In this document: piece by piece, positions 10,080 through 47,604 of the stretch | Numbering within the stretch: the stretch's first letter is position 1 | How the letters are laid out: every line of letters begins with the position of its first letter | Assembly (NCBI GenBank): GCA_963514005.1 | Contig: OY740783.1 | Span: 128,960,001-129,024,000, forward strand | DNA: 64,000 nt | Origin: Raja brachyura | Lineage: Eukaryota | Reading direction: 5' to 3' | Notes under the pieces: generated by a model | The model's database searches: none | Seen by the model: the letters and a program-made list of their open reading frames with translations, nothing else | Told to the model about the DNA's origin: nothing | Program-made: the position numbers and the translations under genes

Positions 10080-10126
<47 letters not shown>

Positions 10127-14050: not shown

Positions 14051-14051
14051 T

Positions 14052-16495: not shown

Positions 16496-16511
16496 TCATT
16501 CCCGACTCATT
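16496..16511 (-). CDS. Receptor gene B, last coding exon (tail RMSRE-stop)
   Basis: Acceptor ggtcttgttctgtccacag|, homologous to the last exon of gene A and phase compatible with the TM exon. Confidence 0.6.
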
Positions 16512-18111
16512 CTGTGGACAGAACAAGACCAGTTAAAATGAGCTTCAGTAATTCCACAGGAAAAGCTTTTTTATTTACCCATCACGGAATGGTTACAGGG
16601 TAGGCGGTGACCACACAGCAGGTCAGGCAGCATCTGTGGAGGGAAATGGACGGACGACGTTCCCGTGTGTCAAGGGACTGCAGATACTGGTTTATCAAAG
16701 AAAGACACTTGATTATTGCAGGGGTATGGGGGAGAAGACAGGAGAATGGGGTTGGGAGGGGAAGATAGATCATCCATGATTGAATGGTGGCATAGACATG
16801 ATGGGCCGAATGGCCTAATTCTGCTTCTTGAACTTATGAACATGAACTTAAGTTCTGGAGAACCCAGTGGGTCAGGCAGCATCTCTGGAGAACACTGGAG
16901 CATTTCTGGTAGATCTGCCCCTTTGTACTTGAGTGCCACTTGATTGCAATTATGTATCATATTATCTGATCTGATTGGATGGCATGCAAAGCAAAGCATT
17001 TCACTGTACCTCAATAGCCGTGCCAATAATTAGCCTAATCCTAACCCTCACTCGCTCACTCTCTTCTGGACTTGCAGCGCTCCATTCACTGAATACCATC
17101 ACATCTGAGCTGTTCAGGCAAAGAATGTGGAGGTCCATGGGGAGAGATGGAGCAGAGCAAGGGAGACACAAGGAACTGCAGATGCTGGAATTGTGAGCAA
17201 AACGCGGAGTGCTGGAGGATTTCATTAGGTCAGGCAGCGTCTGTGGAGGGAATGGACAGGGAACATTTCGGGCCAGGACCCCGCCTTCACCCCCTGAATT
17301 TCTTTTCCCCTTTAGGTTCAGGTTTATTATTGACACGTGAACTGAGGTACAGTAAAAAGTTTTGTCTTTTATGCAAAACAATCAGATCAGATTATGCTAC
17401 ACATAAAAACAATCAAGTCAAACAAGTACGATAGGTAGAGCAAATGGGAAGATGCAGTGTAGACTATAGTTCTCAGCATTGTAGCGCATCAGTTCCAGAG
17501 ACAATGTCCAATGTCTGCAATCGGCACAAAAGGTTTAGAGGGATATGGGTCAAATGCTGGCACACGGGATTATATCAGGCGGGGCCAACGGGCCTGTTTC
17601 CATGCTGTGTGTAATAGACAAATTGGATGCTGAAATGGGTAGACAAGGTTTGACACAGAGAAAAACAGAGAAAATCTGGATAGAAAGGATAATGGCAGAC
17701 TGTGCAAGATCCACATTTCTGGAATAATGAATGAATGAGTGAATGAATGAATAAGTTTGGACGAATAAGTTTGAATGACTAAAAATAACTTCTCAGATGT
17801 CCAAGAGGGGAAGGCATTGTGAGAACAGAGGGAGAAAGGACTGGCAATCTTGCAGGAGACAGGGTGTGGCTGGGTGTAGTCAAGGAAGGTCTAGTGTGAG
17901 TGTGTTTGCCGTAGATATCTATGGATAGTCAGTCCCCTGAGATAGAGACCGAGAGATTGAGAGAGGGGAGAGAACACTGAGAACACTCAGTTGGTCAAGC
18001 AGCATCTACAGAGGAGAAGAGGAATTAATGTTATTGATGAATCGCCGGAAGAAGACCATGAATTACATTGCAGACATTGGAAGGCAAGTATCTCGCAGCA
18101 AAATTACATAC

Positions 18112-18211
18112 CTGGTTTTGTCCCTGATTAAAATGAAGCCCATCACCAAAAGGACAAGGCTTTTCACTCCAAGTGGAATACACAGTATCAGAGGGTAGGA
18201 AAACTGTGGGG
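18112..18211 (-). CDS. Receptor gene B, transmembrane exon with an intramembrane lysine
   Basis: Acceptor ctctctcttcag| and donor AG|gtatgt; 100 nt. Encodes APQFSYPLILCIPLGVKSLVLLVMGFILIRDKT. Confidence 0.85.
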
Positions 18212-18759
18212 CTGAAGAGAGAGAAGTCAAATCAGACTTGATCAATAACATGGAGACAATTCATTTTACTATCTCCAGCAGAAGGTACAGATGCTTGAAA
18301 GTGTGCACCACCAGACTCAGGAATAGCTCCTTCCCCTCTGTTAGCAGGCTTCAGAACGATCCTTGCAAATACTAGGGTACTGTCACCTCTACCTCATTGA
18401 GGACATTGGACTTCGTCTGTGGAACTGGTGTGCTATAATGCTGAGAACTATATTCTGCACCCTGTATCTTCTATGCTCTACTTATTGTACTCGAGTTTGG
18501 TTCGATTGTGTTTATGTGTAGTATTATCTGATCTGTTTGGATAGCGTGCAAAATGAAGCTTTTCTCTGAATATGGCTACACATGGCAATAATAAACTTAA
18601 ATCTGAACCTTAAAGACGTTAGGCATTAAAATGGGCATTATGAGGAAGACATGCCTAGTATATCAGTGAAGGACTGGTGCTTAACCCAAGAGCTTACATT
18701 GTGGGGAAGCATGATGCAAAAAGAGGCCAACATACTAAAGGTAACTTAGTAAATACTCA

Positions 18760-19463
18760 GGTAGACACAAAATGCTGGAGTAACTCAGCGAGTGAGGCAG
18801 CATCTCTGGAGAAAAGGAATTGGCAACGTTTCGGCTCGAGACCCTTCATCAGACTGATGTCAGGGGACGGGGCAGGACAGAGGAAGAATGTAGGCAGAAT
18901 GTAGACAGTAAGACTAGTGGGAGGACTGGGGAGGGGATAGATAGTGAAAGCAAGGGCTACCTGAAGTTAGAGAAGTCAATGTTCATACCGCTGGGGGTGT
19001 AAACTACCCAAGGGAAACATGAGGTGCTGTTCCTCCAATTTGTGCTTGTCCTCACTCTGACAATGGAGGAGGCCCAGGTCAGAAAGGTGAGATTGGGAAA
19101 TGGGAGGGGGAGTTGAAGTGCTGAGCCATCGGGAGATCAGGTAGGTTAAGACGGACTGAGTTCAGCAAAACGATCGCCGAGCCTGCGCTTGGTCTCGCCG
19201 ATGTAGAGAAGTTGACACCTGGAACAGCGGATGCGGTAGATGAAGTTGGAGGAGATGCATGTGAACCTCTGCCTCAGCTGGAAAGACTGTCGGGGTCCTT
19301 GGATGGAGTCGAGGCGGGAGGTAAAGGGACAGGTGTTGCATCTCCTGCGGTTGCAGGGGAATGCCTGGGGAGGGGGTGGTTTGCGTGGGAAAGGATGAGT
19401 TGCCCAGGGAGTTACAGAAGGAACGGTCTCTGCAGAAAGTAGTAAGGGGTGGAGATGGGAAGA
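18760..19463 (-). mobile_element. Penelope-like element 3' fragment (GIY-YIG region and terminal repeat with a hammerhead-like motif)
   Basis: Homologous to 10540-11030. The reverse complement of about 18823-18853 reads ctgatgaagggtctcgagccgaaacgttg. Confidence 0.8.
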
Positions 19464-21197
19464 TACTCACACTAGGAGTAACCCAATAAATAGATTTAGG
19501 ATGCATTTAGAGTACAAGGCATAGCTTGCTGGAGTAAAGATAAACATAGGAGACTGTAAACCAGGCTGAGAGCAATAGAACTGATCAGGAAATAGAGATG
19601 TCCTTTGTTGCACCCACTGTCAGACAAATGGGGGAATGCTTTTCTAAATAACAAGGAATAGAAGATAAAATAGAAATCCTGGGGGAAAAAAACAAGGATG
19701 AAAGCTGCCGAGAAGCGTTGTTGAATTATTTTGAAATGTAGAATCTATATGTGGCCGTTGTGACCAAAGGCCTATCGATGCTGTGAATCATTGAAACACT
19801 TTGGGTTTGCTCAGAGTGTTCCCCAGTATTTTGTGTGAAGGCCTTGAATAACACGACTTGTTTGAGAAACTCGTCACCATCCTGCGAGATGTTGTTTGTG
19901 TGCTGCCCGTCCAGGTCAAGCACACAATTCCCTCCAACAAGGACCAACAAAATGGAGTCACACGGTTGCCCTTGACATTGGGGCAGTGGGGAAGATTAAT
20001 AATAATGGGGTCTGTGGAGCAAACTCGCTGATTGCTGGAGTCACAGTGTAAGGTAAGTGGTTGTGTTTGCTCTGGGTTAATCACCTCAACGCCAGCATCG
20101 TGTAGAGTCCCAACTATTTCCAGCTGCTCCATCAATGACCATCCCCCAACAAAGTGCAGCATAGTAGCGCCACTGAGAGAGCCGCGGCCTCAGAGACCCT
20201 GGTTCGATCCCAATCTCAGGTGCTGTCTGTGTGTGGAGTTTGAACGATCCCCCTGTGACCGCTTGGGTTTTTCCTCCAGTTGCTCCGGTCACCTCGCACA
20301 CTCAAAAGACATAAAGGTTTGTAGGTTAATTGGCTTTGGTAAAATTTAAATTGCCCCCAGTGTTTGGAATAGTGCTAGTGTACAGGGTGATCACTGGTCA
20401 GTGTAGTCTCGGTGGGCCAAGGTCCTGTTTCTGCTCCAAAGATATGACACCATTCACAGAGCACAGGTCAAGAGTGATGCAACACTCTCCAATTCTTCAC
20501 TAACAACCTTTAAGAAGCTCAAAACTTTCCAAAACAAAGCTGCCAACTTAGAATAGTGTTTAGAGATACAGCGTCCCCGCTGACCAATGATCACACGTAC
20601 ACTAGTTCTATGGTGTCCAATTTTTCTACGCACTTGGAGCAATTTACAGAAGCCAATTAACCTACGAACCTATGTGTCTTTCAAATGTGGGAGCAAACCG
20701 GAACTCCAGGAGAAAACCCACACGGTCAGAGAGAGAATGTGAACATTTTGTATAGAGAGCACCCATAGTCAGGATCGAAACTGGCTGTCTGGCGCTGTGC
20801 GGCATCAACTCTACTGCTGTTCTGCCCTCTTAATTCTATATTGGCCCCATAGCAGAAAACGTCGCGGGGCTGGAAACCGGAAGTATCCTGAGCTAATTCT
20901 GCTCACACCTTCTGCTATCGCGATAAGTGATGGCTTCCATTGATTGTCGCCGGAAGCTTGCATCCTTTTCAGGACGGACGATGACAGCGAGGGCAACATT
21001 TGTAACAAGATGGACTTGAAAAGAAGAAGAAGCAGCAGAAGAATTCTATTTTATCCTACTTTTTCATTCTAAAACCTTGGAATAATTTACAGTGGCCAAG
21101 TAATATACAAATCCACATGTCTTTGGAGTATGGGAGGAAACCTGGGCACCCGGAGAAAACCTACGTGGTCACAGGGAGAACGTACAAACTCCGTATA

Positions 21198-22125
21198 CAC
21201 CGTTGTTCGTTAAATGCCAGACATACCTTGATACAATTCAAAGTATTACATAGATTACATTATTCAAAAACGAAATTAAATAGAATTTTTCCTAACATTT
21301 CCTCTATTTGTGATAAATGTCAGAATTCAGAAGCTAATTTAACGCATAGTTTTGTATAAAACTTAATAGTTATTGGACCGATATTTTTAAAATCATTTCT
21401 GCAGTTCTTAAAATTAAATTGGACCCCGACCCAAAGCTAATAATATTAGGAGTTTCTGATTCAAACCTTATATTAACAGTAAATCAAATAAATTTTCTTG
21501 ATTACTGTTTGATAATTGGAAAAAAATAAATATTAAAATTCTGGAAGGGAACATTATCCCCCACAATTAAAATGTGGACAGTGGAAATGTCGGAGACGCT
21601 GCATTTGGAGAGAATCAGGTTTGTCCTAATGGACAAATACAAACTTTTTGAACAAATATGGTCTCCATTCACTGACTATTTGAAGGGGTAGCTGAGCTCA
21701 GCATTGTAACTCAATAAATACCCGGTTGTAGGATTAGATGAAAAGATGTATTCTGGGATTTGTATACACGTCTCTATAGATATTGTTATGTGAAATTGTT
21801 CCATTCATTGTTAAGATGTATACTTCAATTTTTTTTTAAATTATATAATAATTGTTTTCTTGGATTATTCTTTATTTTTATTTTTGTTTTTTTGTTAATT
21901 TAATTAATTTTTTATTTTCCTTACATTATCATAATCAATATTATTTAATCACCACTGATTATAGACCTATTCTTTCACCTCTTTACTTTCTAAAAAAAAA
22001 ATAGAATCTTATATAAATCATTTTGTAATATTTGTATAACTTTTGAAACGTTAAATGTGTATTTGAAAAACTGTTATATTGTTGGCAATAGGCATTGCTT
22101 CGAATAAAAATATTATATAAAAAAA
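21198..22125 (+). mobile_element. 5'-truncated L1-clade LINE (C-terminal CCHC region, AT-rich 3' UTR, poly(A))
   Basis: Encodes IQFKVLHRLHYSKTKL..CDKC..ANLTH; AATAAA and A-tail at about 22103-22125; flanked by a 161-bp direct duplication. Confidence 0.85.
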
Positions 22126-23395
22126 AGAAGAATTCTATTTTATCCTACTTTTGCATCCTAAAACCTTGGAATAATTTACAGTGGCCAAGTAATGTACAAA
22201 TCCGCATGTCTTTGGAGTGTGGGAGGAAACCTGGGCACCCGGAGAAAACCCACATGGTTACAGGGAGAACGTACAAATTCCGTATAGACTTCTGACCGGT
22301 CCTTCCATAAGCTAAGACACAGTTCCGATTGTCCAATCTACCTCATTGCGGACATTGGTCTCTGGAACTGCAACGCAAACTAGTTTTCTATAATGTGGGT
22401 GGCATGGTGGCACTGCGGTAGAGTTGCTGCCTTCCAGTGCCAGAGACCCGGGTTCAATCCCGACTACGGGTGCTGGCTATACTGAGTTTGTACGTTTTCC
22501 TTGTAACTACATGGGTTTTTGCCGAGTGCTCTGGTTTCCTCCCACAATCTAAAGACATACAGGTTGATCGGTTAATTGGCTTTAGAAAGATTATAAATTT
22601 TGATTAGTGTGTAGGATTGTGCTTGCGTATGGGGTGGTCGTTGGTCAGCACCAACCCGGTGGACCGAAGGGCCTGTTTCTGCGCTGTAATTCTCCATATT
22701 CTGCAATCTGATTTCTTTCTCTTCGCTCTACCTATTATAGTCAACGAGTCATCGAGTCATACAATGTGGAAACAGGCCCTTCAGCCCAAATTGCCCCCAC
22801 CGACCAACATGTCCCATCTACACTATTGTGTAGGAAAGAACTGCAGATGCTGGTTTAGATCTGCCTGAAGAAGGGTCTCAACCCGAAACGTCACCCATTC
22901 CTTCTCCAGAGATGCTGCCTGTCCCGCTGATTTACTCCAGCGTTTGTGCTTAACATCTACACTAATCCCACTTGTCTGCATTTGGCCCATATCCCTCTAA
23001 ACCTGTCCTATCCATGTACCCGTTTAATTGCTTCGAAAACGTTGTGATAGTACCTGCCACAGTTACCTGCTGCTGCATCTCGTTCAATACACCTATCACC
23101 CTTTGTGCGAAAAAGTTACCCCTCAGATTCCAATAAAATCGTTCCCCCCTCCCCTTAAACCATTGTCCTCTGGTTCTCGATTTCCCTGCTCTGGGCAAAA
23201 GTGTGCGTCTACCCGATCAATTCCTGTGGCACATGTTTGGTTTGATTGTGTTTGACTTGATCAAATAGACTTGCAAACAAAAGCTTTTTAACCATACTTC
23301 GGTACACGTGACATTACAAAACAAAAACCTAGCACTAAAGCTAACCCTAAATACCTTCGCTGCATACTGCAGCATGAGTTGATGGGGTTTCTTAC

Positions 23396-23743
23396 CTGTT
23401 GCAACTTGCAGTTGGATCTCGCACTGGAACAGATGACAGGTCGAGGTCACGATCTGCACCACACACAGGTAGCCGTCACTGTCCTCCACACTCAGCTGCT
23501 TTATCCTGGTTGAGGCGTTTCCCCGCTTTGGGTCCCCGACCAGTTCGATCCGAGTTGCACCGTTCTCCGCCGCCCAGGATCCATCAGCTTGGGGTGTGAA
23601 CGTGACGATGTGTCGGTAGAGATCCTTCCTCATCCATGTGACCGTGCGAGGCATGTGGCTCGGCAGAGGAGTTGAGAACACACAAGGTAACGTAGTCGAA
23701 GCCCCCTCGGTCCCAGTCACCACTGAGACATTCCCTCTGGGAG
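23396..23743 (-). CDS. Receptor gene B, second Ig V-set exon (V2)
   Basis: Acceptor tccttccttcag| and donor G|gtaaga; 348 nt, phase 1-1, open. Motifs LPC..VTW..EDSDGYLCVVQI..QLQV. Confidence 0.88.
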
Positions 23744-24267
23744 CTGAAGGAAGGACAGACACCAGTCAAGAGAAGCAGGACGAGGGAGCTGGAGATAATG
23801 TAAGCTGGAAATAAGAACTGGATGCTGGACTCATGCTGAATGAGCATTAGATGTGTCATAAGTTCATAAGTGATATGAAATGAATTAGGCCATGCGGCCC
23901 ATCAAGTCTACCATTCAAATATGGCTGATCTATCTTACCCTCTCAAACCCATTCTCCTGCCTTCCACCCGTAACCCGTGACACCCGCACTAATCAAGAAT
24001 CTGGCAAATCTCTGCCTCAAAAAATACCCATTGAATTGACCTACACAGCCTTCCGTGGCAATGCATTCCACAGATTCACCACACTCTGACTAAAGAAATT
24101 CCTCCTCATCTTCATTCTAAACATACATCCTTTTATTCTGAGGCTGTGGCCTCTGGTCCTTGACTCTCCCACTAGTGGAAATATCCTCTCCACATCCACT
24201 CGATCCAGGCCTTTCAGTATTCAGTAAGTTTCTATGAAGTCCTCTCTCACCCTTCTACCCTCCAGCC

Positions 24268-24918
24268 CATGGGCGTAAATAACGGGGGGGGGACGGGGGG
24301 GGGGCACGTCCCCCTCATGTTTTGAGAGGCGGGGGACAATCCCCCCCATGTTTTGTAATCGGATTTTGAAAATCTGTAAAAATCTCCGCTTTCCACGAGA
24401 CAGTAAGGGTGGAACTGATGATCATGGACGCCAATTGGACAAGAGAGACGTCGGTCAGCAGGCAGTGGGGGGGGGGGGGGGCGAGATGATGATTCAGCGT
24501 GATGATTGGAGGAGGGACGTGTCGGTGAGAGGTGGAAGTAGGGGGGTGGGACTAAGGATAGAGCGCGGTGATTGGAGGATGGGGATGTCATGGTGGAGCA
24601 AAGATTATAGAGCGGAGCTTGAATTAGCCCGTTTGTGGGGCCTTTCATCGCACCGTCGGGCGATGGAAGATCCCGCGGCTGGTTTTAAGCTGCGCTGGGC
24701 GATGAAAGGCCCCGCGAACGGGCCGATTGAAGCACCACTACACAGGGCGGACAAAGCTGCTGTTGCTGGAGTGCGGAGTCGTTCACCAACCAGATCAGCT
24801 CCCGATGTTATCGTCCACAGGGCCCACGGCCGAAGTCTCGCATGTGTGTGTGTGTGTGGGCGAGCGGCCACCAAGAAATTGTGTCCCCCCTATGTTTTGA
24901 TATCGATTTCCGCCCCTG
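24268..24918. mobile_element. Non-autonomous hAT-type DNA transposon, 651 bp
   Basis: Imperfect TIRs catgggcgtaaat / atttccgcccctg and an exact 8-bp TSD ctccagcc (24260-24267, 24919-24926). The empty site is retained in the paralogous segment near 37140. Confidence 0.85.
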
Positions 24919-24995
24919 CTCCAGCCAGTACAGGCCCAGTGCCATCAAACGCTCATCATATGTTAACCCACTCATTGCCACTGGGATCATTCTCA

Positions 24996-27970
24996 TAATA
25001 GACAAGAGACAATAGACAATAGGTGCAGGACTAGGCCATTCGGCCCTTCGAGCCAACACCGCCATTCAATGTGATCATGGCTCATTATCCACAATTAATA
25101 CCCCGTTCCTGCCTTCTCCCCATATCTCCACTATCTTTAAGAACCCTATCAAGCTCTCTTGAAAGTATCCGGAGAACCGGCCTCCACCCCCCTCTGATGT
25201 AGTGTACACGCAGAGAATTCCACAGACTCACAACTCTCTGTGTGACAAAGTTCTAAATGTCTTACCCCTTAATCTTAAACTGTGACCCCTGGTTCTGGAC
25301 TCCCCCAACATCAGGAACATGTTTCCTCCCTCTTCCGTGAGAAACGCTTAATGATATTATATGTTACAATAGAATCCCCTCTCATCCTTCTAAATTCCAG
25401 AGTACACAAGCCCAGCCACTCCATTCTCTCAGCATATGACAGTCCCGCCATCCCAGGAATTAAACTTGTGAACCGAAGCTGCACTTTTTCAATAGCAAGA
25501 ATGTTCTTCCTTAAATTTGGAGACCAAACCTGCACACAATACTTCAGGTGTGGTCTCACTATAGCCCTGTACAATTTCAGAAGGACCTCTTTGCTCCTAT
25601 ACTCAACTCCTCTTGTTATGAAGGCCAACATGCCATTAGCTTTCTTCACTGCCTGCTGTACCTGCATGCTTATTTTTATTGACTAATGAACAAGGACCCC
25701 AGATCTCATTGTACTTCCCCTTTACCCAACGTGACACCATTTAGATAATAATCTGCCTTCCTGTTTTTGCTACCAAAGTGGATAACCTCACATTTATCCA
25801 CATTAAACTGCATCTCCCATGCATCTGCCCACTCACCCAACATGTCCAAGTCACCCTGCATTCTCATAGCATCCTCCTCACAGTTCACACTACCACCCAG
25901 CTTGGTGTCATCTGCAAATTTGTTAATGTTACTTTGAATCCCTTCATCTAAATCATTGATGTATATTGTAATTCGCTGCGGTCCCAGACCATGCCTTGCG
26001 GTAAACCATTAGTCTTTGCCTGTCATTCTGAAAGGGACCCGTTAATCCATACTCTTTGTTTCCTGTCTGCCAACCAATTTTCTATCCATGTCAGCACTCC
26101 ATCACCAATACCATGTGCCCTAATTTTGCCCACTAGTCTCCTATGCAGGATGTAATCAAATGCTTTCTGAAAGTCCAGGTACACTACATCCACTGGCTCT
26201 CCCTTGTCCATTTTCCTAGTTACATCCTGAAAAATTCCAGAAGATTAGTCAAGCACGATTTCCCCTTCATAAATCATGTTGACTCAGACCGATCCTGTTA
26301 CTGCTATCCAAATGTGTGGCTATTTCATCTTTTACGATTGACTCCAGCATCTTCCCCACCACTGATGTCAGGCTAACTGGTCTATAAGTCCCTGTTTCCT
26401 CTCTCCCGCCTTTCTTAAAAAGTGGGATAACTATAGCTACCCTCCAATCCACAGGAACTGATCCTGAATGTATAGAACATTGGAAAATTATCACCAATGC
26501 ATCCACGATTTCTAGAGCCACTTCCTTAAGTACCCTGGGATGCAGACCATCGGGCCCTGGGGATTTATCAGCTTTCAGTCCCATCAGTCTACCTAACACC
26601 ATTTCCTGCCTAATGTGGATTTCCTTCAGTTCCTCAGTCACCCCAGATCCTCTGGCCACTAGGACATCAGAAAGAATGTCTGTGTCCTCCTTAGTGAAGA
26701 CGGATCCAAAGTACCTGTTCAACTCATCTGCCATTTCCTTGTTCCCCATAATAAATTCACCTTTTTCAGTCTTCAAGGGTCGAATTTTGGTAATAACTAT
26801 TTTTTTCCTCTTCACATCCCTAAAGAAGCTTTTTCTATCCACCTTTATATTCTTGGCTAGTTTACCTTCGAACCTCATCTTTTCTCCCCGTATTGCGTTT
26901 TTAGTTATCTTCTGTTGCTCTTTAAACATTTCCCAATCCTCTTGCTTCCCGCTCATCTTTGCCATGTTGTACTTCTTCTCTTTTATTTTTAATCTGACCT
27001 TGACTTCCCATGTCAGCCACGGTCACCCCTTACTCCCCTTGGAATCTTTCTTCCTCTTTGGAATGAACTGATCCTGCACCTTCTGTATTATTCCCAGAAA
27101 TACCTTCCATTGTTGTTCCACTGTCATCCCTGCTAGGGTATTTTTCCAGTCAACTTTGGCCAGCTCCTCCCTCATGGGGCCATATTCCCCTTTATTCAAC
27201 TGTAACACTGACACCTCCGATTTACCCTTCTCCCTCTCATATTGTAGATTCAAACTTGCCATATTATGGTCACTACTTCCAAATGGCTCCTTAGCCTCAA
27301 GTTCCCTTATCAAATCCGAATCATTACATAACACTAAATTCAGAATTGCCTTCTCCCTGGTAGGCTCCTGTACAAGCTGCTATAAGAATCCATCATGGAG
27401 GCATTCCACAAACTCCCTTTCTTGGGGTCCAGTACCAACAGTATTTTCCCAGTCTACCTGCATGTTGAAATCTCCCATAACAGCTGTAGCATTACCTTTA
27501 CGACATGCCAATTTTATCTCCTGATTCAACTTGCACCCAATATCCAGGCTACTGTTTGGGGGCCTTTACCCTTACAATTCCTTAGTTCTATCCATAACGA
27601 CTCCACATCTTCTGTTTCAATGATACCCCATGCAAGGGACTGAATTTCATTCTTCACCAACAGAGCTACCCCCTGCCCACTCTCTGGCTTTTCGATAGCC
27701 CTGACCCTCTTGCAGCCATGTTTCTGTAATTCCCACAACATCATACTTGCCAATTTCTAACTGAGCCTCAAGCTCGTCCACTTTATTTCTCATACTTCGC
27801 ACATTCATATACAACTCTTTGACTTCGGTATTCACCTCCCCTCACACACCTGACCAATTGGCCCTGACCTTACTCTCTTATCCCTTCTCGAACTTTCCTT
27901 CCCAATAATTCGGGAGTCTTTTGTAACTTTTCCTGTACTCACGTCCCCTTTAACTCCATCTTTATACTCC
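24996..27970 (-). mobile_element. CR1 LINE, near-complete ORF2 region with stops, frameshifts and deletions
   Basis: Endonuclease pieces (YMNVRS, GITETWL, SSDHN), RT pieces (KSPGPDGLHPRVLKE, YRPVSLTS, YLDFQKAFD) and a (ctattgt)n tail near 25000. Confidence 0.92.
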
Positions 27971-28344: not shown

Positions 28345-28800
28345 ACTTACACACACACATATGCACATGCGCACGAAGACATACACATATGCATGAATGC
28401 ACACACACACATACACACAACATGCGCGCACACACACGCATATACACACAACATGCACACATACACTTGTGCACACTCACAAATAAACACGTGCTATCAC
28501 GCATGTACAAACACGTGTACACACACAGACACTCAACATGCCCACATACACACACACACATACCCACACATGCTCACACATGCACACACAGCCATACACA
28601 CACCCCCACACTTACACACCAATCACACACCCATGCCTGCACAATATAGGGTTGCAGATGCACACATACATTCACAGATATATGCACACAGAAATGAGAT
28701 GCCACACACAGTCACTAACATACACACAAACGACACATACACAGTGACACGTGCACTCTGCCGCATATACACACGCACACACACAGCCACACACATACTC
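28345..28800. repeat. Degenerate (CA)n-rich tract; inverted paralog (TG)n at about 36055-36760
   Basis: Low-complexity sequence; the overlapping His/Thr and Val/Cys ORFs are artefacts. Confidence 0.9.
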
Positions 28801-29699
28801 TGTAGGTGTAGCACCACATTCTGCACTGTTCATAATTTTCTCTTTTGCTCTTCCTGATATACTCAACTTCTCAACATTTCAACATAAGGCCAGCACAGTG
28901 GCGGCAGTAACAGTGCCGGAGACGCGGATCCATCCCGGTTTTCCTTGTGTGCTCCGGTTTGCTCCCACATTCCAAAGGCGTGCAAGTTTGTAGGTTAATT
29001 GGCATCTGTAAATTGCCCCTAATGCGTAGGATGCGAAACTGGGATCGCATAGAACTGGTGATCGCTGGTTGGCGGGGACTCAGTGGGCCAAAGGGCCTGT
29101 TTCCATGCTGTGTCTCTAAACTAAACTCAATCTAGAAGACGTTTGGACAGGTACATGGATACGAAAGGTTTAGAGGAATATGGGTCAAAGACAGGCAGGT
29201 AGCACTAGTGTAGAGGAGGCACCTTGGTCATCATGGGAAAGTTGGGACGAAGTGCCTGTTTCCACACTGTATGACTGTGATATGATTTCAACATAACAGG
29301 TGTCAGGGGTTATGGGGAGAAGGCAGGAGAATGGAGTTAGGAGGGAGAGATAGATCAGCCATGATTGAATGGCGGAGCAGACTTGATGGGCCGAATGGCC
29401 TAATTCTACTCCTATTCCTTATGACCTTAGCATGCAAAACAAAGATTTTCACTCCATCTCGGTAAATAATAATGCACCAATCAACCAATTAATATCCAAT
29501 TAAATCAAAGTAAGGGAGAAACTCAGTGGGTCAGGCGGCATCTGTGAAGAGAATGGACAGTCTGTCTAATCCCTCCACCGATGCTACCTGAATTGCTGGG
29601 TTCCTCCAGTACCTTGTTTTGCTTGGGATTGAAGTCTTTTGTCTTGGTTGGGATGTATTGGTTACTAGAAGGGCCAGTTACTAGTTTAGTTTTCTGTCA

Positions 29700-30220: not shown

Positions 30221-30607
30221 ATTTAGGACAAATCACAGAATCCCATTAACAGACAAACATGTGTCTTTCAAATGTGAGAGGAAACTGGATCACCGGGAGA
30301 AAACCCACGGGGTCACAGGGATAACGTGCAAACTCCAGACAGACAGCATCCGCAGTTAGGATCGAACCCGGTTCACTGGCGCTGTGAAGCAACAGCTCTA
30401 CAGCTATTATGTTGAAATGCTGAGAGGTTGAGTATGCGAGCTGGCGCAAAGAAAGAACATTATCAGAGTGCAGTAGAATGTGCTGCAGCGTCAGAGAAAG
30501 TGCAGGTGAAAACAATTTGCAAAGGCTGCAACAAGGTGGATTGGGAGATCGAGCCCGTGTCTCCACCACTGCTCCACCGTTATTGGTACAATTAGAGCCT
30601 TCCTCAC

Positions 30608-30988
30608 CTCTCACAGTCAGGCGAATGACCTTTGGTAATAGAGGAGGTCCACCGACGTCTTTCACATTGCAGATAAATGGACCATTATCCTTCTGTCCCA
30701 GTCGCTCCACCACTATCGAGGCATCCCCCCGACTGAGGTTCCCGATGAACCTAAACCGACCTCCTCCTGCCTCATGCCCCACTCCATCACACAAGGAGTG
30801 GAAGGCAGCAGTGAACCGACACGTAATAATGGCATTGTAACCCTGCAGGTCACCTTTGAACCAGCTCAGCTCGGGTTTGATGGTGCGATCAGTGGCCAGG
30901 GGGGTGAACGTGCATGGCAACACGGCCGATCCTCCTTCCATGGCAGACACTTCATCGGCAGGTGGAAAATGCCAAGTGTGGGTGGCTG
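30608..30988 (-). CDS. Receptor gene B, first Ig V-set exon (V1), strongly Siglec-15-like
   Basis: Acceptor ccctttctattccag| and donor G|gtgagg; 381 nt, phase 1-1. Motifs EVSAMEGGSAVLPCTFT..SWFKG..TCRFTAAFHSLC..RFRFIGNLSRGDASIVVERL..FICNV..IRLTV, including the extra Cys pair typical of the Siglec-15 V domain. Confidence 0.88.
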
Positions 30989-31355
30989 CTGGAATAGAAA
31001 GGGTCGGTAATCAATGTTGCGTCGGTAATATCGTGGATAACATTTAGTGCAAGATAAAAGTCCAGTAAAGTTTGATCATAGACTGTCCAAAAGTCTCCAA
31101 TGAGGTAGATAGTGGTTCAGGACCGCTCTCCAGTTCCAGTAGGATGGTTCAGTTGCCTGATAACAGTCGGGAAGAAACTGTCCCTACACCTGGAGGTGTG
31201 CGTTTTCACACTTCTTACCCTTTTGAGCCTGAGTCTGTGGTGTTATGTGTCAGCAACTGTACCGCTGCGCCACTGTGACAGCCAAAGGGAAAAATACAGA
31301 GGACATTTCAGGTCAGGCCGTTCTAAATGATGTCCGTCCTGTTCCCTTCTCAAAT

Positions 31356-32384
31356 TAGCAATGTTACAAAATTTTGAGATTTAAAAAATCAAGTCTGCAA
31401 TTTATCCCATCAGATAAAGCATAAAAGTAAGTTTAATTTGACACCGAATTCACTTTCATATCTTCAGTATTAAGAAAGTTATGGCCATTTTCATACTCGG
31501 AAATTAGCATCTTGTTCCCCATTGCCTTTCAATTGACTTAACTCAAAAGCTGTGATCTGGATCAGTTAAAAGTCCATAACTTTCTTAAAAATTAATAGAA
31601 CTCAATGAAATTTTCAGTTATTATAGATTGAAGCATTCTGAAATAAATATGAAACAATCTTACTTGGATGACCTGAAATTAAAGCATATAATTAGTTAGT
31701 TATCCAATTGTAGCTAATTACAAAATTTAATGAGTAAATCTAAACATCTATCCATTTCTTAAGAAAAGATAAACTTTTTTTAAATTGCCTAAGTGTCCAA
31801 ATAACATTCACACAATAATCCACAATATAACATAATTTTTTTAATCTAATATACATGAATTTCTGATGGAAGGAATTTAGTGTTTGATTCCTGTAAATTA
31901 ATGGGCATTTAAATCAACTAGCGAGTGGGTTTTAGTGGAATGCGGTGGATTGGAACGTTGCAGTTAGCGGTGAAGTCGGGAGGAAAAATACTGTTTGTTC
32001 ATACATTTTTTTGGACCCCATTTTGCAACACGGAAATGTTATTAAAGCCTCCCAAAAAACCAACTTTTAATATAAAAATAAACTATTTACCTTTTTTTCT
32101 CCCCTACGCAAAATCCTTCCGGTTGTCGGTTCTCACGTCTTTCGAAGGTGATTTTTAAATTACTCTAGTTAATAAATAATTTAGAGTAATTTAAAAATAC
32201 CTTAATTCATGAAATGTCGGAGCGATTTTTCTTCCGCAACGAAATCGCCCGACATTGATCGATTTTTCCTGCCTGTGGAAAAATGTCACTTTAAGCCCGC
32301 CCCCCTCTGAAAGGCGCCAAAGTCGCGCACACGGGGAGCGGCAGAACTGCAGCGCTGCTCAAGGTAAGTTTTGTAACATACCTA
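31356..32384 (+). mobile_element. AT-rich non-autonomous DNA transposon, about 1.03 kb, superfamily unassigned
   Basis: Imperfect terminal inverted repeats tagcaatgttacaaaa / ttttgtaacataccta; second copy at 14052-14835. Confidence 0.7.
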
Positions 32385-33082
32385 GTCAAATGCTGCCTGA
32401 CCCGTTCACTCCCTCCAACACTTTGTCATATTTTTCCCCACACAAGAATCATTTTGAAGCCACTGTGATTCACAGGAGGTCATTAAACAAATACATTTTG
32501 GAATCAACATTTCAAATTGTGGATTTTCAGGTGGAAAGAAATTGTGTGGGGGGCGGGGGGGGGGGGGAGTAAAGGCCTGGAGGACATTGATCTGAGGTTT
32601 GAAATAACCCTTTAGGAGGAAATGAGAATATTAAAAGGATGTTCCTTCAGAAAGGAGATGAGGAGGAATTTCTTTAGTCGCAGGGTGGTGAATCTGTGCA
32701 AGTCATTGCCACAGACGGCTGTGGAGGCCGCCCATTGATGTTTTTAAGGTGGAGATTGACAGTTTCTTGATTCGTAAGAGTGTCACGGGTTATGGGGAGA
32801 AGGCAGGAGAATGGTGTTGAGACAGCCATGATTGAATGGCGGAGTAGACTTGATAAGTAGGTTGGATAGCATATAAACAAAAGTTTTTCACTGTACCTTG
32901 GTACCAGGTACGGGGTACTGATTGTGGATGATCAGCCATGATCATATTGAATGGTAGTGCTAGCTCGAGGGGCCAAATGGCCTGCCCCTGCATCAATTTT
33001 CTATCTTTCTATCATTCTACTCAGCTGGAAGACCTCAGCAGACCAAGTCGTAACCGTGGAGAGAAAGGAACGACAGGCACAA

Positions 33083-33470
33083 AATGCTGGAGTAACTCAG
33101 CGGGTCAGGCAGCATCTGTGGAGAACATGGATAGGTGACGTTTCACAGAGTGCTGGAGTAACTCAGCGGGTCAGGCAGCATTTGTGGAGAACACAGATAG
33201 GTGACGTTTCACAGAGTGCTGGAGTAACTCAGCGGGTCAGGCAGCATCTGTGGAGAACATGGATAGGTGACGTTTCACAGAGTGCTGGAGTAACTCAGCG
33301 GGTCAGGCAGCATCTGTGGTGAACACAGATAGGTGAAGTTTCACAGAGTGCTGGAGTAACTCAGTGAGTCAGGCAGCATCTCTGGAGAACATGGATAGGT
33401 GATGTTTCACAGAGTGCTGGAGTAACTCAGCGGGCCAGGCAGCATCTGTGGAGAAAAGGAACAGGTGACA
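33083..33470. repeat. 66-bp tandem repeat, about 6 units
   Basis: Unit cagagtgctggagtaactcagcgggtcaggcagcatctgtggagaacatggataggtgacgtttca. Confidence 0.92.
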
Positions 33471-35319
33471 TTTCTGGCCGCGACACTTTTTCATGCTGAA
33501 AGATAGAGGAGGCCAGATCAAACCAGGGCCAGCAACAGAGGACCTCAAGGAAGGGTGGAGACCATAATGGCCTCCATTAATTGTCTGGGAATGGTCGAGA
33601 TTTCTGGTGGTGACGATCCCATTCCCCTCCTTCTTTTCCTGTAGCCTGTTATTTACTCATGGTGATCAGTAAGAACGGTCTCGACCCGAAACGTCACCCA
33701 TTCCTTCTCTCCAGAGACGCTGCCTGTCCCGCTGAGTTACTCCAGCTTTTTGTGTCTATCTGAACCCTCTCTAAGATATCAGTCCATCACTCATTCCTGA
33801 GCATGCTACTATCTAAGCTGCCACATGGTGGCGCAAGTGGTACAGTTGCCTGGGACCTCGTGTGCAATGACACAGTCATAGATTTATACAGCGTGGAAAC
33901 AGGCCCTTCGGCCCAACTCGTCCATGCTGACCTCGCTCGTCCCATTTGCATTTGCCTGACCCATAACCCTCTCAACCTTTCCAACCCACGAACCTGTACA
34001 AATGTCTTATAAACATTATAATTGTACCTGCCTCCGACGCTTCTTCTGGGAGCTCTTTCCACACACACACACCACCCTCTGTATGAAATACTTGCCCCTC
34101 AGCTCCCTTTTACGTGTGTAGATTTAGCTTGAAGAAACAGCGATTAAACAGGCCCTTCAGCCCGCTGAGTCTGTGCTGACCATCCATCAACACTTTAACT
34201 CTAGTTTAATTTAGTTTAGAGATACAATGTGGAAACAGGCTCTTCGGCCCACCGAGTCCGCGCGGACCAGCGATCCCTGTACACTCGCTCTATCCTACAC
34301 ATCAGGGACAATTCACGGCAGCTAATTAATCTACAAACCTGCACGTCTTTGGGCTGTGGGAGGGAACTGGAACACCTGGAGGAAGCCCACAGGGTCACGG
34401 GGAGAACGTGCAAACTCCACACAGACAACCGTGGTCGAGATCGAAGCTGGGAATCTGGTGATGTCAGGCAGCAACGTTACCGCTGCGCCACTCTGCCACC
34501 CTAGTTCTACGTTATCCCACTCTCTATACACTAGGGGCAATTTGCAGAGGGCCAATCAGCCTACAAACCCACACATCTTGGAATGTGGGAGGAAACCGGA
34601 GTACCAGGAGAAAACCCACACGGTCACAGGGTGAACGTGCAAACTCCACACAGACAGCGCCCGAGGTCAGGATCTCTGGTGCTGTGAGTCAGCAGAAACC
34701 TGGCATCACATTCGGCGCAGACACAGCGGACTGAAGGACCTGATCCTGTGTTGTGCTGTTCTATGTTCCATTTTTCCAGTACATTAATGACTACACCGGT
34801 AATGCTTCCTGCTCTTGTGCTGAAACTTAACGGTTTGTCATTTCTGCAGCAAATTTCCACATTGTTTGCATTAGAACAAGGGAAAGAGGAACAGGGGTAA
34901 GCCATTTGGCCGCTCGAGCCTTGTCTGCTTACACTGTGGCCGTGGCTGGTCTTTTGTCTTCACACCATCCCCTGCTCCACGCCTTCATCCCCCAACATCA
35001 AGAAATCTATCAGATTTTCTATTTTGAAGTCACAAAGAACGTGCTTATCGACACCCCTACTTCCTCACTAGTTTGAGGAGTCTCGGCATGTCGCCGAACA
35101 CGCTACTCAACTTGTACAAGTATACGGTGGAGAGCGTAAAGACTGGTTGCGTCACAGCCTGGTTCAATAACTCGAACACGCAGGAAAGAAGGAGGCTGCA
35201 AAGAAGATGCGGGGGGAAGGGGGGGTCTTGTCTCCCACACCCTCAAGGTCGACTGTGGGAAGCGCCCACTGGGCACGAAGGCCGAAGGTGGCCAGGAGAG
35301 GAGAGGGATGAAAGTCATA

Positions 35320-38155
35320 AGGTCATAAGGAATAGGAGCAGAATTAGGCCATTCAGCCCATCAAATCGATTCCACCATTCAATCATACCTGATCTATCTC
35401 TCCCTTCTAACCCCATTCTCCTGCCTTCTCCCCATAACCTCTGATGCCCGTTATGTTGGAATTATTTCATAGTCATACTGTGTGGAAACAGGCACTTCGG
35501 CCCAACTTTCACAAGATGACCAAGATGCCTCCTCTACACTAGTGCTACCTGCCCGTCTTTGGCCCATATTCCTTTAAATCTTTCATATCCGTGTACCTGT
35601 CCAAATGTCTTCTAGATTTAGGGTTACACAAAAAGCTGGAGAAACTCAGTGGGTGCAGCAGCATCTAAGGAGTGAAGGAGATAGGCGACGTTTCGGGTCG
35701 AGACCCTTCTTCAGACTGTCTTCTAGATTTAGTTCAGTTTAGAGACACAGCATGGAAACAGGCCCTTTGGCCCACTGAGTCCCCGCCAGCCAGCGATCAC
35801 CAGTTCTATGTGATCCCATTTTTGCATCCTACGCATTAGGGGCAATTTACAGAAGCCAATTAACCTACAAACTTGCACGTCTTTGGAGTGTGGGAGGAAA
35901 CCAGAGCACACAAGGAAAATCTGGCATTGTTTCTGCCACCACCGTGCCGGCCTTATGTGAAATGTTGAGAAGTTGTGTATATCAGGAAGTGCAGAAGAGA
36001 AAATGATCACAGTGCAGAATATGGCACTACACCTACAGAGAAAGTGCAGGTAAGAAAGTGTGTATTTGTGTGTATGTAAATGTGTAAAATGTGTGTCTGG
36101 TGCTGCATTTGTGCCTGCATATGTGTCTGTGCGAGTGCATGTGTGTGTGAGTATGTGCGTGCCTATCTCCATGCATGTGTGATGTGTATGGGTGTGTGCA
36201 TGTGGGTTGTATATCTATATGTGTATGATTCTGTAGGGTGCGTGCATGCACGTATGCGTCAATGTCCCTTGGTTTGCGTGTGTCATTGGATCATTGTGTA
36301 TGTTTTTGTATAAATGTGTGAGTGCGTGTATGTGTGTCCATTTGTATGATCTTGTGCGTGCGTATGACTTTATGTATGTGAGTGTGTGTCACTTGCTGGT
36401 GTATGTTTGTGTGTCTGTCTATATTTCTGTATGTGTGCACATCTCATTTGTGTGCGTGTGTATATGCGGCAGTGTCACTGTGTATGCGTCTACTTTGTGC
36501 GTATGTCAGTGACTGTGTGTGTCTCTAATTTCTGTGTGCATATATCTGTGACTGTATGTGTGCATTTGCATCCCTATATTGTGCCGGCATGGGTGTGTGT
36601 GTGGTGTGTGTGTGTGGGTCTGTGTGTGTGTGTGGGTCTGTGTATATGTGTGCGTATATGTGGGTGTGTGCATGTGTGTGTGTGTGTGTGGGTGCACGTG
36701 TTTGTACATGTGCGTTGGCACATGCGAGTGTGTGCATGTGTATGTGTGCATGTTGTGTGTATATCAGATATTCAGATATTCAAACTTTATTGTCATTGTG
36801 CAGTGTACAAGTACAGAGACAATGAAATGCAGTTGGCATCTCACCCAGAAGTGCGAACACAGAATAATGGAACAGTAATATATATATATATGTATATACA
36901 GCAGCAGTAGTGCAATCATGCCATACGCATGCACCAAAGACAAAAAAATCCATATTGGCTACGGTGGAGATGCTGCCTTACAGTGCCAGAGGCCCGGATT
37001 TGATAGCAGTATGCGTGTATGTGTGTGTGCATGTTGTATGTATGTGTGTGTGTGTGTCTAGTGGAGGTTTACGAGAATGATCGCAGGAATGAGTGGGTTA
37101 ACATATGATGAGCGTTTGACGGCACTGGGCCTGTACTGGCTGGAGTGTAGAAGGATGAGAGGGGACTTCATAGAAACTTACTGAATAGTGAAAGGCCTGG
37201 ATAGAGAGCATGTGGAGAGGATGTTTCCCCTAGTGGAAGAGTCAAGAACAAGAGGCCACAGCATCAGCATAAAAGGAGATGAGGAGGAATTTCTTTAGTC
37301 AGAGGGTGGAATTCATATAGAAACATAGAAACATAGAAAATAGATGCAGGAGGAGGACATTCGGCACTTCGAGCCAGCAACGCCTTTCATTGTGATGATG
37401 GCTGATCGTCCCCTATCAATAACCCGTGCCTGCCTTCTCCCCATATCCATTGACTCCACTAGCCCCAAGAGCTCTATCTATAGAAACATAGCAAATAGGT
37501 GCAGGAGGAGGCCAAGGGTGCGGGTCGAAGGGTGTGGAGGCCCTCAATGGATATTTTTGAGGCAGAGATTTGCCAGATTCTTGATTAGTACGGGTGTCAG
37601 GGGTTGCGGGGAGAAAGCAGGGGAATGGGGTTGAGAGGGTAAGGTGGAACAGCCATGTTTGAGTGATAGAGTAGACTTGGTGGGCCGAATGGCCTAATTC
37701 AGCTCATATCACTTATGAACTTATGACACGTCTAAAGGTCATGAGTCCAGCATGAGTCCAGCATGAGTCCAGATTCCAGTTCTTATTTCCAGCTTACATT
37801 ATCTCCAGCTCCCTCATCCTGCTTCTCTTGACCGGTGTCTGTTCTTCCCTCAGCTCCCAGCGGGCATGCCTCAGTGGCGACTGGGACTGAAGGGGCTTCG
37901 GCCATGTTACCGTGTGTGTTCCCAACGCCTCAGCCCGATACCGTCCCACTCACGGTCACGTGGATGAGGAAGGATCCCTACCGACACATCGTCACGTTCA
38001 GACCCCAAGCTGACGGATCCAGGGCGGCGGAGAACGGAGCAACTCGGTTCGAGCTGGTCGGCGACCCAGAGCATGGAAACACCTCAACCAGGATAAAGCA
38101 GCTGAGTGTGGGGGACAGTCACGGCTACCTGTGACTGGTGGAGATCGTGATCTCA
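35320..38155 (+). repeat. Inverted segmental duplication of the gene B V1-V2 intron and V2 exon (about 23440-29430)
   Basis: Collinear reverse-complement matches: 35320-36760 to 28480-29430; 37058-37270 to 24130-24267, 24919-24995 and 27972-27985; 37580-38155 to 23440-24030. Confidence 0.85.
37854..38155 (+). pseudogene. Pseudo-exon copy of receptor V2
   Basis: Acceptor intact, but the second Ig Cys codon is TGA (38132-38134) and the G strand and donor are missing. Confidence 0.85.
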
Positions 38156-38639
38156 TTCCCTCTTCCAATTCCCAATTTTAAAACTTACCAAAGCCAATTT
38201 TTAAATTTTTTTAAAAAATATTTTTTTATTAGAAGTAATGTACAAAGCCAATTAACCTACAAACCTGTACATCCTTGGAGTGCGGGAGGAAACCGGAACA
38301 CCCACATAGGTAGAATGTCCAAACTCCGTACAGACAGCACCCATAGCCAGGTCAAATCCGGGCCTCTGGCGCTGTGAGGCAGCATCTTTACCTTAGCCAA
38401 TAGGGAATCTTTCTCTACCGTGCATGCGTATGGCATGATTGCAAGCCAAGAATCAACAGTGCTTAATTATCGTATGTACTGAAACAAAACATTGAAATTC
38501 TTATTTACAACAGCACAACTGGTCTGTAGGCACATTAGATAGCAGAATAATCAAAAGATCAATAAAGTTATAAAAAAAACAATATTAGTGTAATAAAAAG
38601 GAACGTCTGATGGTGGTTTATACCAAAGATAGATTCAAA

Positions 38640-38830
38640 ATGCTGGAGTCACTCAGCGGGTCAGGCAGCATCTGTGGAGAACATGGATAGGTGACGTTTC
38701 ACAGAGTGCTGGAGTAACTCAGTGGGTCAGGCAGCATCTCTGGAGAACATGGATAGGTGACGTTTCACAGTGCTGGAGTCACTCAGTGGGTCAGGCAGCA
38801 TCTCTGGAGAACATGGATAGGTGACGTTTC
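38640..38830. repeat. 66-bp tandem repeat, about 3 units
   Basis: Same unit as 33083-33470. Confidence 0.85.
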
Positions 38831-40091
38831 TGCTCAGGACCTTTCTTCAGACTGATTGCAGGGGTGGGAGGAGGAAAAGCTAGAAGAGAGGAGGGGCAGG
38901 ACAAAGTTCGGCAGGTCATAGGTGAGCACAGGCGAGAGTGGTTTTGATAAACAAATGAAACGACAAAGCCTGGAGGTGAGCAGAAATGTCCCTCAATCCC
39001 TCACATCTTTTCTGACATTTGATGCAATCGTGGATGCACTAAAAAATCGGGTACATTGTACAATGCACACCAACAACTTTCCTTCCTTAGAAGGCTTAGG
39101 AAGTTCGGCATGTCCCCTATAACCCTCAACAACTTCTACACATGCACCATCCAAAGCATTTTAATGGGATGCATCACCACACGGTTTGGGATCAACTCCA
39201 TCTAAGACCGCAAGAAATTGCAGAGAATTGAGGACGCAGCCCAGACCATCACACAAACCAACCTCCCTTCCATTGACTCCATTTGCACCTCACGCTGCCT
39301 CGGCAAGGCCAGCAGCATAATCAAGGATGAGTCGCACCCCGGCCATTCCCTCTTCTCCCCTCTCCCATCAGGCAAGAGGTACAGAAGTGTGAAAACGAAC
39401 GCACCACCTCCAGATTCAGGGACAGTTTCTTCCCAGCTGTTATCAGGCAACTGAACCATCCCATCAACAACTGGAGGGCGATCCTGAGCTACCAATGTGA
39501 CTTGGACGTGATCCAAGTCACATTGGAGCCCCTTGGAATATCTTGAATCGGACTTTACTGGACCTTATCTTGCACTAAATGTTATCCCCTTTATCCTGGA
39601 TCTGTACACTGTGGACGCTTTGGATTGTAATCATGTATGGTCTTTCTGTTGAGTGCATGGCACACAACAAAAAAAGCTTTACACTGTACCTCAGTACACC
39701 TGGCAATAAACTAAACTAATCTAAACTGGGTGACATTTCTGAAGACTGGCCCTGAAACGAAACATCACCTATCCATGTTCTTCAGTCTAAAGATGGGTCT
39801 AAGTCTCCTCAGTCTGAAGAAGGGTCTCGACTCAAAACATCACCTATGCCTTTTCTCCAGAAATGCTGCCTGATCTGTTGTCACTCCAGATTTTTGTGTC
39901 CACCTTCACCAGAAATGCAGCCTGACCCGCCGAGTTACTCCAGCACTTTGTGTCGATCCCGATATTAGTATATCCCATGGTCTGACTGGAAAGCACACAA
40001 ACACGGTTCTTCACTGTAACTCGGTACAGGCAACAGTAATAAACCTACACTGTACCAAAAAGACGATCGTAACAAATAAAAAAACACCTAC

Positions 40092-40152
40092 TGTTTCCAT
40101 GTACTGAGACCAACAGCAGAACTGTCGGCAGCCAAGTGGAGAGGAGCCTCAT
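40092..40152 (-). CDS. Receptor gene B, leader (signal peptide) exon MRLLSTWLPTVLLLVSVHGN
   Basis: ATG, hydrophobic core and a VHG cleavage-like site; 61 nt with a phase-1 donor A|gtaggt that joins V1 in frame. Non-repetitive sequence, too short for the ORF track. Confidence 0.75.
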
Positions 40153-47597: not shown

Positions 47598-47604
47598 TCC
47601 TTGG

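Follow-up and report, generated by a model that had tools for sequence, protein, structure and literature searches.

A stretch of 64,000 nt from Raja brachyura (contig OY740783.1 of assembly GCA_963514005.1, positions 128,960,001 to 129,024,000 of the forward strand; the whole of it is called the window below, and coordinates are those of the window) contains on its minus strand an intact immune-receptor gene, which we named gene B. It encodes a leader, two immunoglobulin V-set domains (V1 and V2), a transmembrane (TM) segment with a lysine and a short tail, and its product is a predicted type I membrane protein. By its sequence, gene B belongs to an elasmobranch-wide family related to Siglec-15, which has activating, inhibitory and secreted members and of which a second gene, gene A, convergent with gene B, lies partly in the window. 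What is new here is that a Siglec-15-type module is found in a V-V, C2-less, multigene family of paired receptors. Overall, we consider it rather probable that gene B is an intact Siglec-15-related V-V receptor of a type that we call type B, with a non-sialic ligand and with signaling by pairing of its TM lysine with an adaptor.

The exon borders in the window were recomputed from the sequence, and the five exons were joined only for a check of reading frame, length, stop codons and cysteine and tyrosine positions; all homology searches and folds were run on single exons or on natural database proteins. Gene B has five exons of 61, 381, 348, 100, and 16 nt, which add up to 906 nt, i.e., 301 codons and a stop, with zero internal stops and intron phases 1-1-1-2. 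Each acceptor is an AG after a pyrimidine tract, and the donors read GTAGGT, GTGAGG, GTAAGA, and GTATGT. Exon 1 (40092-40152, 61 nt, minus strand as all gene B exons) holds the start codon and the signal peptide MRLLSTWLPTVLLLVSVHGN and ends at the donor GTAGGT in phase 1; its peptide shares 90% identity with residues 1-20 of both Leucoraja P0187 and Amblyraja P0001 (tblastn, E 1.2e-6). An intron of 9.1 kb leads to exon 2 (30608-30988, 381 nt), which encodes V1, a V-set domain resembling that of Siglec-15, with an extra cysteine pair and the motif FICNVKD (Pfam V-set, 1.9e-8), and an intron of 6.9 kb leads from there to exon 3 (23396-23743, 348 nt), which encodes V2, the second V-set domain (Pfam V-set, 9.2e-14). 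Both exons match the Pfam model across nearly its full length. Exon 4 (18112-18211, 100 nt, donor GTATGT, phase 2) encodes a short stalk and the lysine-bearing TM segment (PQFSYPLILCIPLGVKSLVLLVMGFILIRDKT). In the TM peptide IPLGVKSLVLL, the lysine is placed close to the center of the TM segment, as estimated by visual inspection of the exon-4 peptide. The ectodomain consists of two glycosylatable V domains with the sequons NLS, NVS, and NAS and is set off from the membrane by a stalk of 7 amino acids. An earlier note on this DNA, which was made from the sequence alone, had proposed these five phase-compatible exons, the length of 301 amino acids and the order leader-V1-V2-TM with a tyrosine-free tail of about 10 amino acids; borders, splice sites and open frame were all reproduced, and the protein reads as claimed.

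For the last coding exon there are two candidates. The first one, proposed in the earlier note, is exon 5 at 16496-16511 (16 nt), which codes for (R)MSRE and a stop and gives a tail ending in RDKTRMSRE. Its acceptor is an AG behind a pyrimidine tract of 14/20, and it is the sole good match to the family tail pattern that a pattern scan gave in the 9 kb behind the TM exon. Tail length and stop position are equal to those of the Leucoraja P0187 tail (RRNRD and stop), and the in-frame continuation of exon 5 (MSRE, stop, STAGG, stop) parallels the longer tails of other members, such as SKREDGSIAGS followed by a stop. Moreover, when the DNA of exon 5 and what follows it is read in another frame (NDPPLEAETPLF..), it matches the C-termini of two TM-less isoforms, Pristis P0191 (TDPLLEAENPCF.., E 2.5e-4) and Mobula P0192, which shows that this stretch is the 3' exon of the family. 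The second candidate lies at 17988-18006 on the minus strand, follows the acceptor ttcctcttctcctctgtag after an intron of 105 nt and reads A TGC TGC TTG ACC AAC TGA, i.e., (R)CCLTN and a stop. Its acceptor is stronger than that of exon 5, and its peptide is identical, residue for residue, to the tail of Rhinoraja longicauda P0047 (..FRDKTRCCLTN). The exon, of 6 codons, sits in a fragment similar to a highly abundant repeat, AGATGCTGC(C/T)TGACC.., and could possibly be a conserved exonised repeat; similar RCCLT-coding pieces are seen at 16867-16884 and 16621-16635 on the minus strand. As last exon, 18006-17988 is equally plausible as 16511-16496. The tail has about 10 amino acids and no tyrosine in both cases (..IRDKTRMSRE or ..IRDKTRCCLTN), and since it is short and tyrosine-free whichever last exon is used, gene B has no signaling tail.

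V1 is specifically Siglec-15-like. Its best match in the PDB is human Siglec-15 (7zoz_A, E 2.9e-9), and the specificity is even more pronounced for the family member P0013, which bears the arginine discussed below and matches human Siglec-15 with an E-value of 2e-16 vs. 3.5e-6 for the next protein, CD33, ten orders apart. The cysteines C25/C106 and the extra pair C56/C66 are invariant or nearly so in an alignment including two mammalian Siglec-15 sequences. The Siglec-15 signatures and the extra cysteine pair that had been read from V1 before are thus borne out by both searches and alignment. An AlphaFold2 model of V1, built from the single exon with the family alignment, has a pLDDT (predicted local distance difference test) of 80.5, and in Foldseek Siglec-15 is at rank 3 among the IgV matches with the highest identity of 32%; the fold searches confirmed the IgV fold for both domains and did not tell families apart. 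The likeness extends into the membrane, as the TM exon of gene B aligns to the TM segment of a mammalian Siglec-15 (P0095) with a score reached by 2 of 2000 shuffles, and to that of the Callorhinchus V-V-C2 protein P0056 with the lysine in register and a score reached by 19 of 2000. In a tree of single domains, the family V1 domains form a clade (support 95/99) that lies in a polytomy with the V domains of mammalian Siglec-15 and with the first domains (D1) of chondrichthyan V-V(n)-C2 proteins. An NKp30-type (NCR3-like) V domain, which the earlier note had left open as an alternative, is not supported, because NKp30 chains align only to V1 residues 5-47 with E-values of 0.03-0.04, far below Siglec-15.

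The second, membrane-proximal domain is a true V-set domain, and the V-V architecture is real. V2 yielded an AlphaFold2 model, made in the same way, with a pLDDT of 90.7 and nine strands, which were assigned A' to G including C' and C'', and the top 50 Foldseek matches listed are nearly all IgV domains (nectin-1 D1, PVR D1, CRIg, CAR D1). V2 and V1 share 33% identity (E 3e-13). No C2 exon or exon coding for an immunoreceptor tyrosine-based inhibitory motif (ITIM) was found in the window by tblastn with the C2-bearing proteins P0056, P0010, and P0095 (E up to 0.05 for C2). In the domain tree, V1 and V2 of the window are nested inside the V1 and V2 clades of the family, and the family V2 clade (100/100) groups with a support of 94/86 with the inner V domains of chondrichthyan V-V(n)-C2 proteins, for example Callorhinchus P0056, which has the order V-V-C2-TM(Lys), and Amblyraja P0010, which has four V domains and then C2. 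Due to this grouping, it is more likely that the family lost the C2 domain from a V-V(n)-C2 ancestor, and a new V domain replacing C2, as had been suggested in the earlier note together with the correct assignment of the second domain, appears less likely.

Relatives of gene B are numerous. When 1.84 billion representatives were scanned by HMMER, the V1 exon as query gave 156 matches; a word-based search with V1 found P0001 only, and the same kind of search with V2 found 28 named RefSeq proteins. The decisive match is the full-length ortholog P0187 of Leucoraja erinacea, a protein of 289 amino acids with leader, V1, V2, a TM segment with lysine and a last piece of 4 amino acids (..IRDKTR joined to RNRD and a stop), which is filed in RefSeq as "hepatitis A virus cellular receptor 1-like isoform X2." The exon peptides of gene B are colinear with P0187 at identities of 90% (leader), 67% (V1), 81% (V2), and 87.5% (TM), an alignment that is far beyond chance. 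The TM exon is also 87.5% identical to P0047 (LOC144592307) of Rhinoraja longicauda, a partial model in which the end of V1, V2, TM and tail are joined at the same codons. In P0001 of Amblyraja radiata ("sodium channel subunit beta-2-like") the same leader is joined to V1, followed by 6 amino acids. For each of three junctions of gene B, one or more orthologous models are therefore in support.

Altogether, there are more than 50 relatives, and the elasmobranch species with such proteins number at least 13. They include skates (Rhinoraja, Leucoraja, Amblyraja), rays (two species of Mobula, Narcine, Hemitrygon, Pristis, Hypanus) and sharks (Mustelus, Heptranchias, Heterodontus, Chiloscyllium, Pristiophorus). 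V-V-TM-Lys proteins with a short tail and V-V-TM proteins with an ITIM tail were found among these genera other than Pristiophorus, and related V-V-C2 proteins are present in a chimaera. Concerning copy number, two genes and two relics are present in the window, and many loci in related species. In a tabulation of architecture classes covering about 55 members, about 19 combine the TM motif CIPLGxK..LLVMG with tails of at most 13 amino acids, about 14 have an uncharged TM segment and tails of 68-237 amino acids, most with ITIM-like motifs (SCTYASI, VIYAAV), and several have no TM segment. The ectodomains of the inhibitory P0012 and the activating P0188, both of Leucoraja, are very similar by eye, and similar ectodomains on such a pair are the signature of paired receptors. 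The lineage-specific multigene offshoot proposed earlier is thus indeed multigene, but spans sharks, skates and rays, and the designation as an activating receptor family is too narrow, as ITIM-tailed inhibitory and secreted members exist. RefSeq calls most of these proteins "uncharacterized" and others Siglec-15 (P0186, P0190, P0197), Siglec-12, Siglec-10, pIgR-like, IgSF3-like or A33-like. The family is present in the databases as predicted proteins under wrong or empty names and is undefined as a family. No paper describing it was found in full-text literature searches, which is not proof, as most subscription journals are outside their coverage. The family can therefore be called undescribed only in the sense that no describing paper was found, since its members are already predicted in RefSeq, some of them auto-named Siglec-15, which the earlier note had allowed for.

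A difference to Siglec-15 lies in the binding site. The essential sialic acid-binding arginine of human Siglec-15 is R143. In the alignment from the PDB search, an asparagine of gene B V1 (ICNVKD) is aligned to the essential strand-F arginine of Siglec-15 (FCRVEF), and the V2 domains of gene A and gene B are both without the arginine. The V1 tree resolves a batoid clade with a support of 99/96, the type B clade, whose members are gene B, Leucoraja P0187, Amblyraja P0001, Pristis P0191, Narcine P0006, Hemitrygon P0198, and Mobula P0192 and P0193. Behind the F-strand cysteine these eight have N, N, N, N, S, H, Y, and N, and the arginine occurs in none of them. All sampled members of the clade are either TM-Lys or secreted proteins, and none is inhibitory. 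In the sister batoid clade, 13 of 14 members keep the arginine, and activating, inhibitory and secreted classes are mixed. A general loss of the arginine in activating members was rejected, as the activating type A proteins P0188, P0189, P0197, P0199, and P0202 keep it. The loss of the arginine characterizes the type B clade and not the activating class. The arginine-less state appears to be old and maintained in intact genes, which argues for a function without canonical sialic-acid binding.

Gene B carries the two sequence features of adaptor-coupled receptors, a basic residue in the middle of the TM segment and a short tail without signaling motif. Activating Siglecs including Siglec-15 couple to DAP12 via a positively charged TM residue (PMC13233462), and the DAP12 signaling of mammalian Siglec-15 serves as the model for the mechanism that we propose. 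The ectodomain of gene B would bind a ligand, which is probably not a canonical sialoglycan, and the mid-membrane lysine would pair with the acidic TM residue of an adaptor of the DAP12, DAP10 or FcR-gamma type. This adaptor would carry the immunoreceptor tyrosine-based activation motif that the tail of gene B lacks, and ITIM-tailed relatives with similar ectodomains would give an opposing signal, as in paired-receptor systems. By analogy with Siglec-14, -15, and -16 and other receptors with charged TM segments, adaptor pairing of gene B is probable, and we infer that the gene is expressed. A more far-reaching version of this reading, which we regard as attractive but would not yet call probable, is that sharks and rays have an undescribed paired-receptor system derived from a Siglec-15-like V-V-C2 ancestor through the loss of C2, in which a batoid-wide, activating-only lineage lost the arginine early, was kept intact and was retargeted to a non-sialic, possibly pathogen-derived ligand.

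Several observations weigh against gene B being such a receptor. Only four sequencing runs hold the stretch, all of them of genomic DNA, and no run recorded as RNA holds the V2 exon. The read contigs over 17800-23790 cross exon-intron borders, e.g., at 18065-18307 through the TM exon, and the mean word depth in this interval is about 40-180 per bin for single-copy sequence (8-15 for single contigs) and huge for repeats. As the runs are genomic DNA of the same organism and of a close relative, they say nothing on splicing. Furthermore, the last exon is ambiguous between 16511-16496 and 18006-17988, the closest Amblyraja model, P0001, consists of leader and V1 only, and TM-less isoforms in Pristis and Mobula imply that soluble products may matter. 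Finally, decayed V2 relics and many retroelements lie nearby, and some copies of the cluster are dying. It could be, although we find it unlikely, that the main products are soluble, V1-only or V1-V2, and act as decoy or opsonin, with the TM-Lys form being minor. P0001 with its leader, V1 and 6 amino acids fits such a role, as do the ends of P0191 and P0192, which match the other frame at exon 5 and are consistent with skipping of the TM exon; in gene B, V2 spliced straight to exon 5 would stop after one codon, as derived from the phase-1 donor of V2 and from the stop in that frame, and give a clean secreted V1-V2 protein. The TM exon, however, is the best conserved part of the gene and better conserved than V1 (87.5% vs. 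67%), and about 19 homologs retain the TM-Lys motif, which is unexpected for a rarely used exon. The idea that two transcription units, one for leader and V1 and another for V2 and TM, were wrongly joined takes up the same end of P0001 after V1 and the length of the two introns mentioned above, but the V2 exon begins in phase 1 without a leader of its own, and P0187, P0047, and every V-V member of the family join V1 to V2 at the same codon, so that this idea is very improbable.

Gene B could also be a silent or degenerating member of a cluster undergoing turnover, and its intactness would then be accidental or due to silencing that took place only a short time ago. This would fit with the two V2 relics that adjoin it, one of them within its own intron 1, with introns full of retroelements, with the kilobase-scale inverted repeats around the V1 exon and with the lack of an RNA run among the runs holding the stretch. 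Yet all five coding pieces are open, the splice sites, signal peptide, disulfide-forming cysteine pairs of the Ig domains, extra cysteine pair and TM lysine are intact, and orthologs exist in Leucoraja, Amblyraja, and Rhinoraja, and we therefore consider decay to be quite improbable. Equally little speaks for gene B as a working sialic-acid lectin and functional ortholog of Siglec-15: V1 is indeed closest to Siglec-15 and keeps fold and extra disulfide, and some RefSeq relatives were auto-named Siglec-15, but the essential arginine is an asparagine and absent across the type B clade, the C2 domain is absent, and the C2-bearing proteins, Callorhinchus P0056 and Amblyraja P0010, branch separately and are themselves better ortholog candidates. 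An intact, membrane-bound and adaptor-coupled receptor with a non-sialic ligand thus remains our preferred reading.

In mammals, Siglec-15 is a single gene encoding a V-C2 protein. Gene B shares with mammalian Siglec-15 (7zoz; P0095, P0068) the motifs WxM..EVSA.G.SAVLPCTFT and GRFRF.GN, the extra cysteine pair, the TM lysine in the context LG.K.L.LL and the lack of an ITIM. In contrast, it has no C2-set domain and a second V domain next to the membrane, an asparagine instead of the arginine, and a tail of about 10 amino acids instead of several tens, and it is one of many paralogs, some of them inhibitory, instead of one conserved gene. Callorhinchus LOC103174418 (P0056) and Amblyraja LOC116971578 (P0010) begin with a domain of the same type as V1 and the V domain of Siglec-15, their inner V domains cluster with V2, and P0056 also has the TM lysine, whereas both retain the Siglec-15-type C2 domain (C.AEGEPPANITW) that the gene B family is missing; P0010 is presumably located on the same chromosome as the family members P0001, P0189, and P0190. 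The skate models P0187, P0047, and P0001 agree with gene B in exon order, junction codons, the asparagine at the arginine site, the TM motif and last pieces of 4 to 5 amino acids, with identities to gene B of 67-72% in V1 and 68-81% in V2, but their names are misleading and no function is recorded for them. Primate Siglec-5/-14 and Siglec-11/-16 as well as KIR, PILR and CD300/MAIR likewise present near-identical ectodomains either on an ITIM tail or on a charged TM segment with a short tail. These paired receptors are of independent origin and have another domain make-up, and the type B activating lineage differs from them in having no sampled inhibitory partner and in the loss of the lectin arginine. 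The skate MDIRs are a multigene family of activating and inhibitory immunoglobulin superfamily receptors with CD300/TREM/pIgR-like domains (PMC3031540). In an indirect comparison with this description, the best PDB matches of gene B include no CD300 or NKp44, TREM-like transcript-1 comes up only at an E-value of 0.08 and pIgR D1 only at 1.5e-5 (V2), and no MDIR-named or Raja eglanteria protein is among the family matches whose names were read.

Siglec-15 is regarded as one of the few Siglecs that are conserved across vertebrates (PMC13233462). The present data show that, in cartilaginous fishes, its V domain and TM-Lys module became part of multi-V proteins and then expanded into a family of activating, inhibitory and secreted members. 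This bears on the age of the pairing between Siglec-type ectodomains and charged-TM/adaptor signaling, on how paired receptors arise and on the fate of a lectin receptor that lost its sugar-binding arginine while being under selection. A curated definition of the family would also improve the annotation of elasmobranch immune genes, as current RefSeq names such as sodium channel beta-2-like or HAVCR1-like are misleading.

Gene A is located on the plus strand, and its leader and V1 lie beyond the window. Its V2 exon (2329-2736, 408 nt; Pfam V-set, 2.1e-14) encodes a long F-G loop insert and is 86% identical to Amblyraja P0189, and its TM exon (4044-4143, 100 nt) contains the lysine (TQSYMVLIMWIPLGLKTVFLSVMCVVFYRDKL). 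Gene A had been described as having the same TM lysine and exon sizes as gene B, which applies to the 100-nt TM-Lys exon but not to V2, which has 408 nt and not 348. Two pattern scans for SKRED or SKSGD followed by a stop did not find its last coding exon in 4144-16400 on the plus strand, an interval that includes the N run 9779-10011. Judged from its V2 and TM exons, gene A can be assigned to the arginine-keeping type. Apart from the two genes, the window contains two V2 relics. A pseudo-exon lies antisense in intron 1 of gene B (37835-38155, plus strand); it has retained its acceptor, carries a TGA at the codon of the F-strand cysteine and has lost the G strand and the donor. The second relic (42936-43079, plus strand) comprises the 3' half only and has an in-frame stop. 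Between 38015-38491 and 42936-43341 there is 74% identity over 488 nt, which shows that the relic itself was duplicated and that the second one is an old duplicate of the first.

The remainder of the region, including the introns of gene B, consists largely of retroelements. Two arms of an inverted repeat of about 1 kb (28536-29429 and 35318-36687), which are 79-94% complementary and partly CA/TG-rich, bracket a 5.9-kb segment holding the V1 exon of gene B; they may have been left behind by an inverted duplication, or may serve as a substrate for inversions within the cluster. At 43830-46810 (minus strand) and 47450-50575 (plus strand) there is a retroelement with open reading frames (ORFs) for a tyrosine recombinase (Phage_integrase) and a reverse transcriptase, which may be DIRS-like, and an adjoining ORF of 1042 amino acids; both have long open frames. 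The 1042-aa ORF has a reverse-transcriptase domain and an endonuclease (weak, below the Pfam cut-off) and is probably ORF2 of a long interspersed nuclear element (LINE). Besides the N run mentioned above, the window has another one at 60229-60360. A GC-rich, exon-like ORF at 62616-62747 on the plus strand has an end resembling the glycine loop of protein kinases, but the enclosing ORF 62466-62747 has no Pfam match and the PDB search gave an E-value of about 1 (PTK6); it may resemble the first kinase exon of TESK1/TESK2, and if this is right, the gene next to the cluster is none of those that flank SIGLEC15 in human. Satellite-like tandem repeats with a unit of about 20 codons (..AGVTQRVRQHLWRTWIGDVSQS..) occur at 62654-63391 and at 32951-33322, both on the plus strand.

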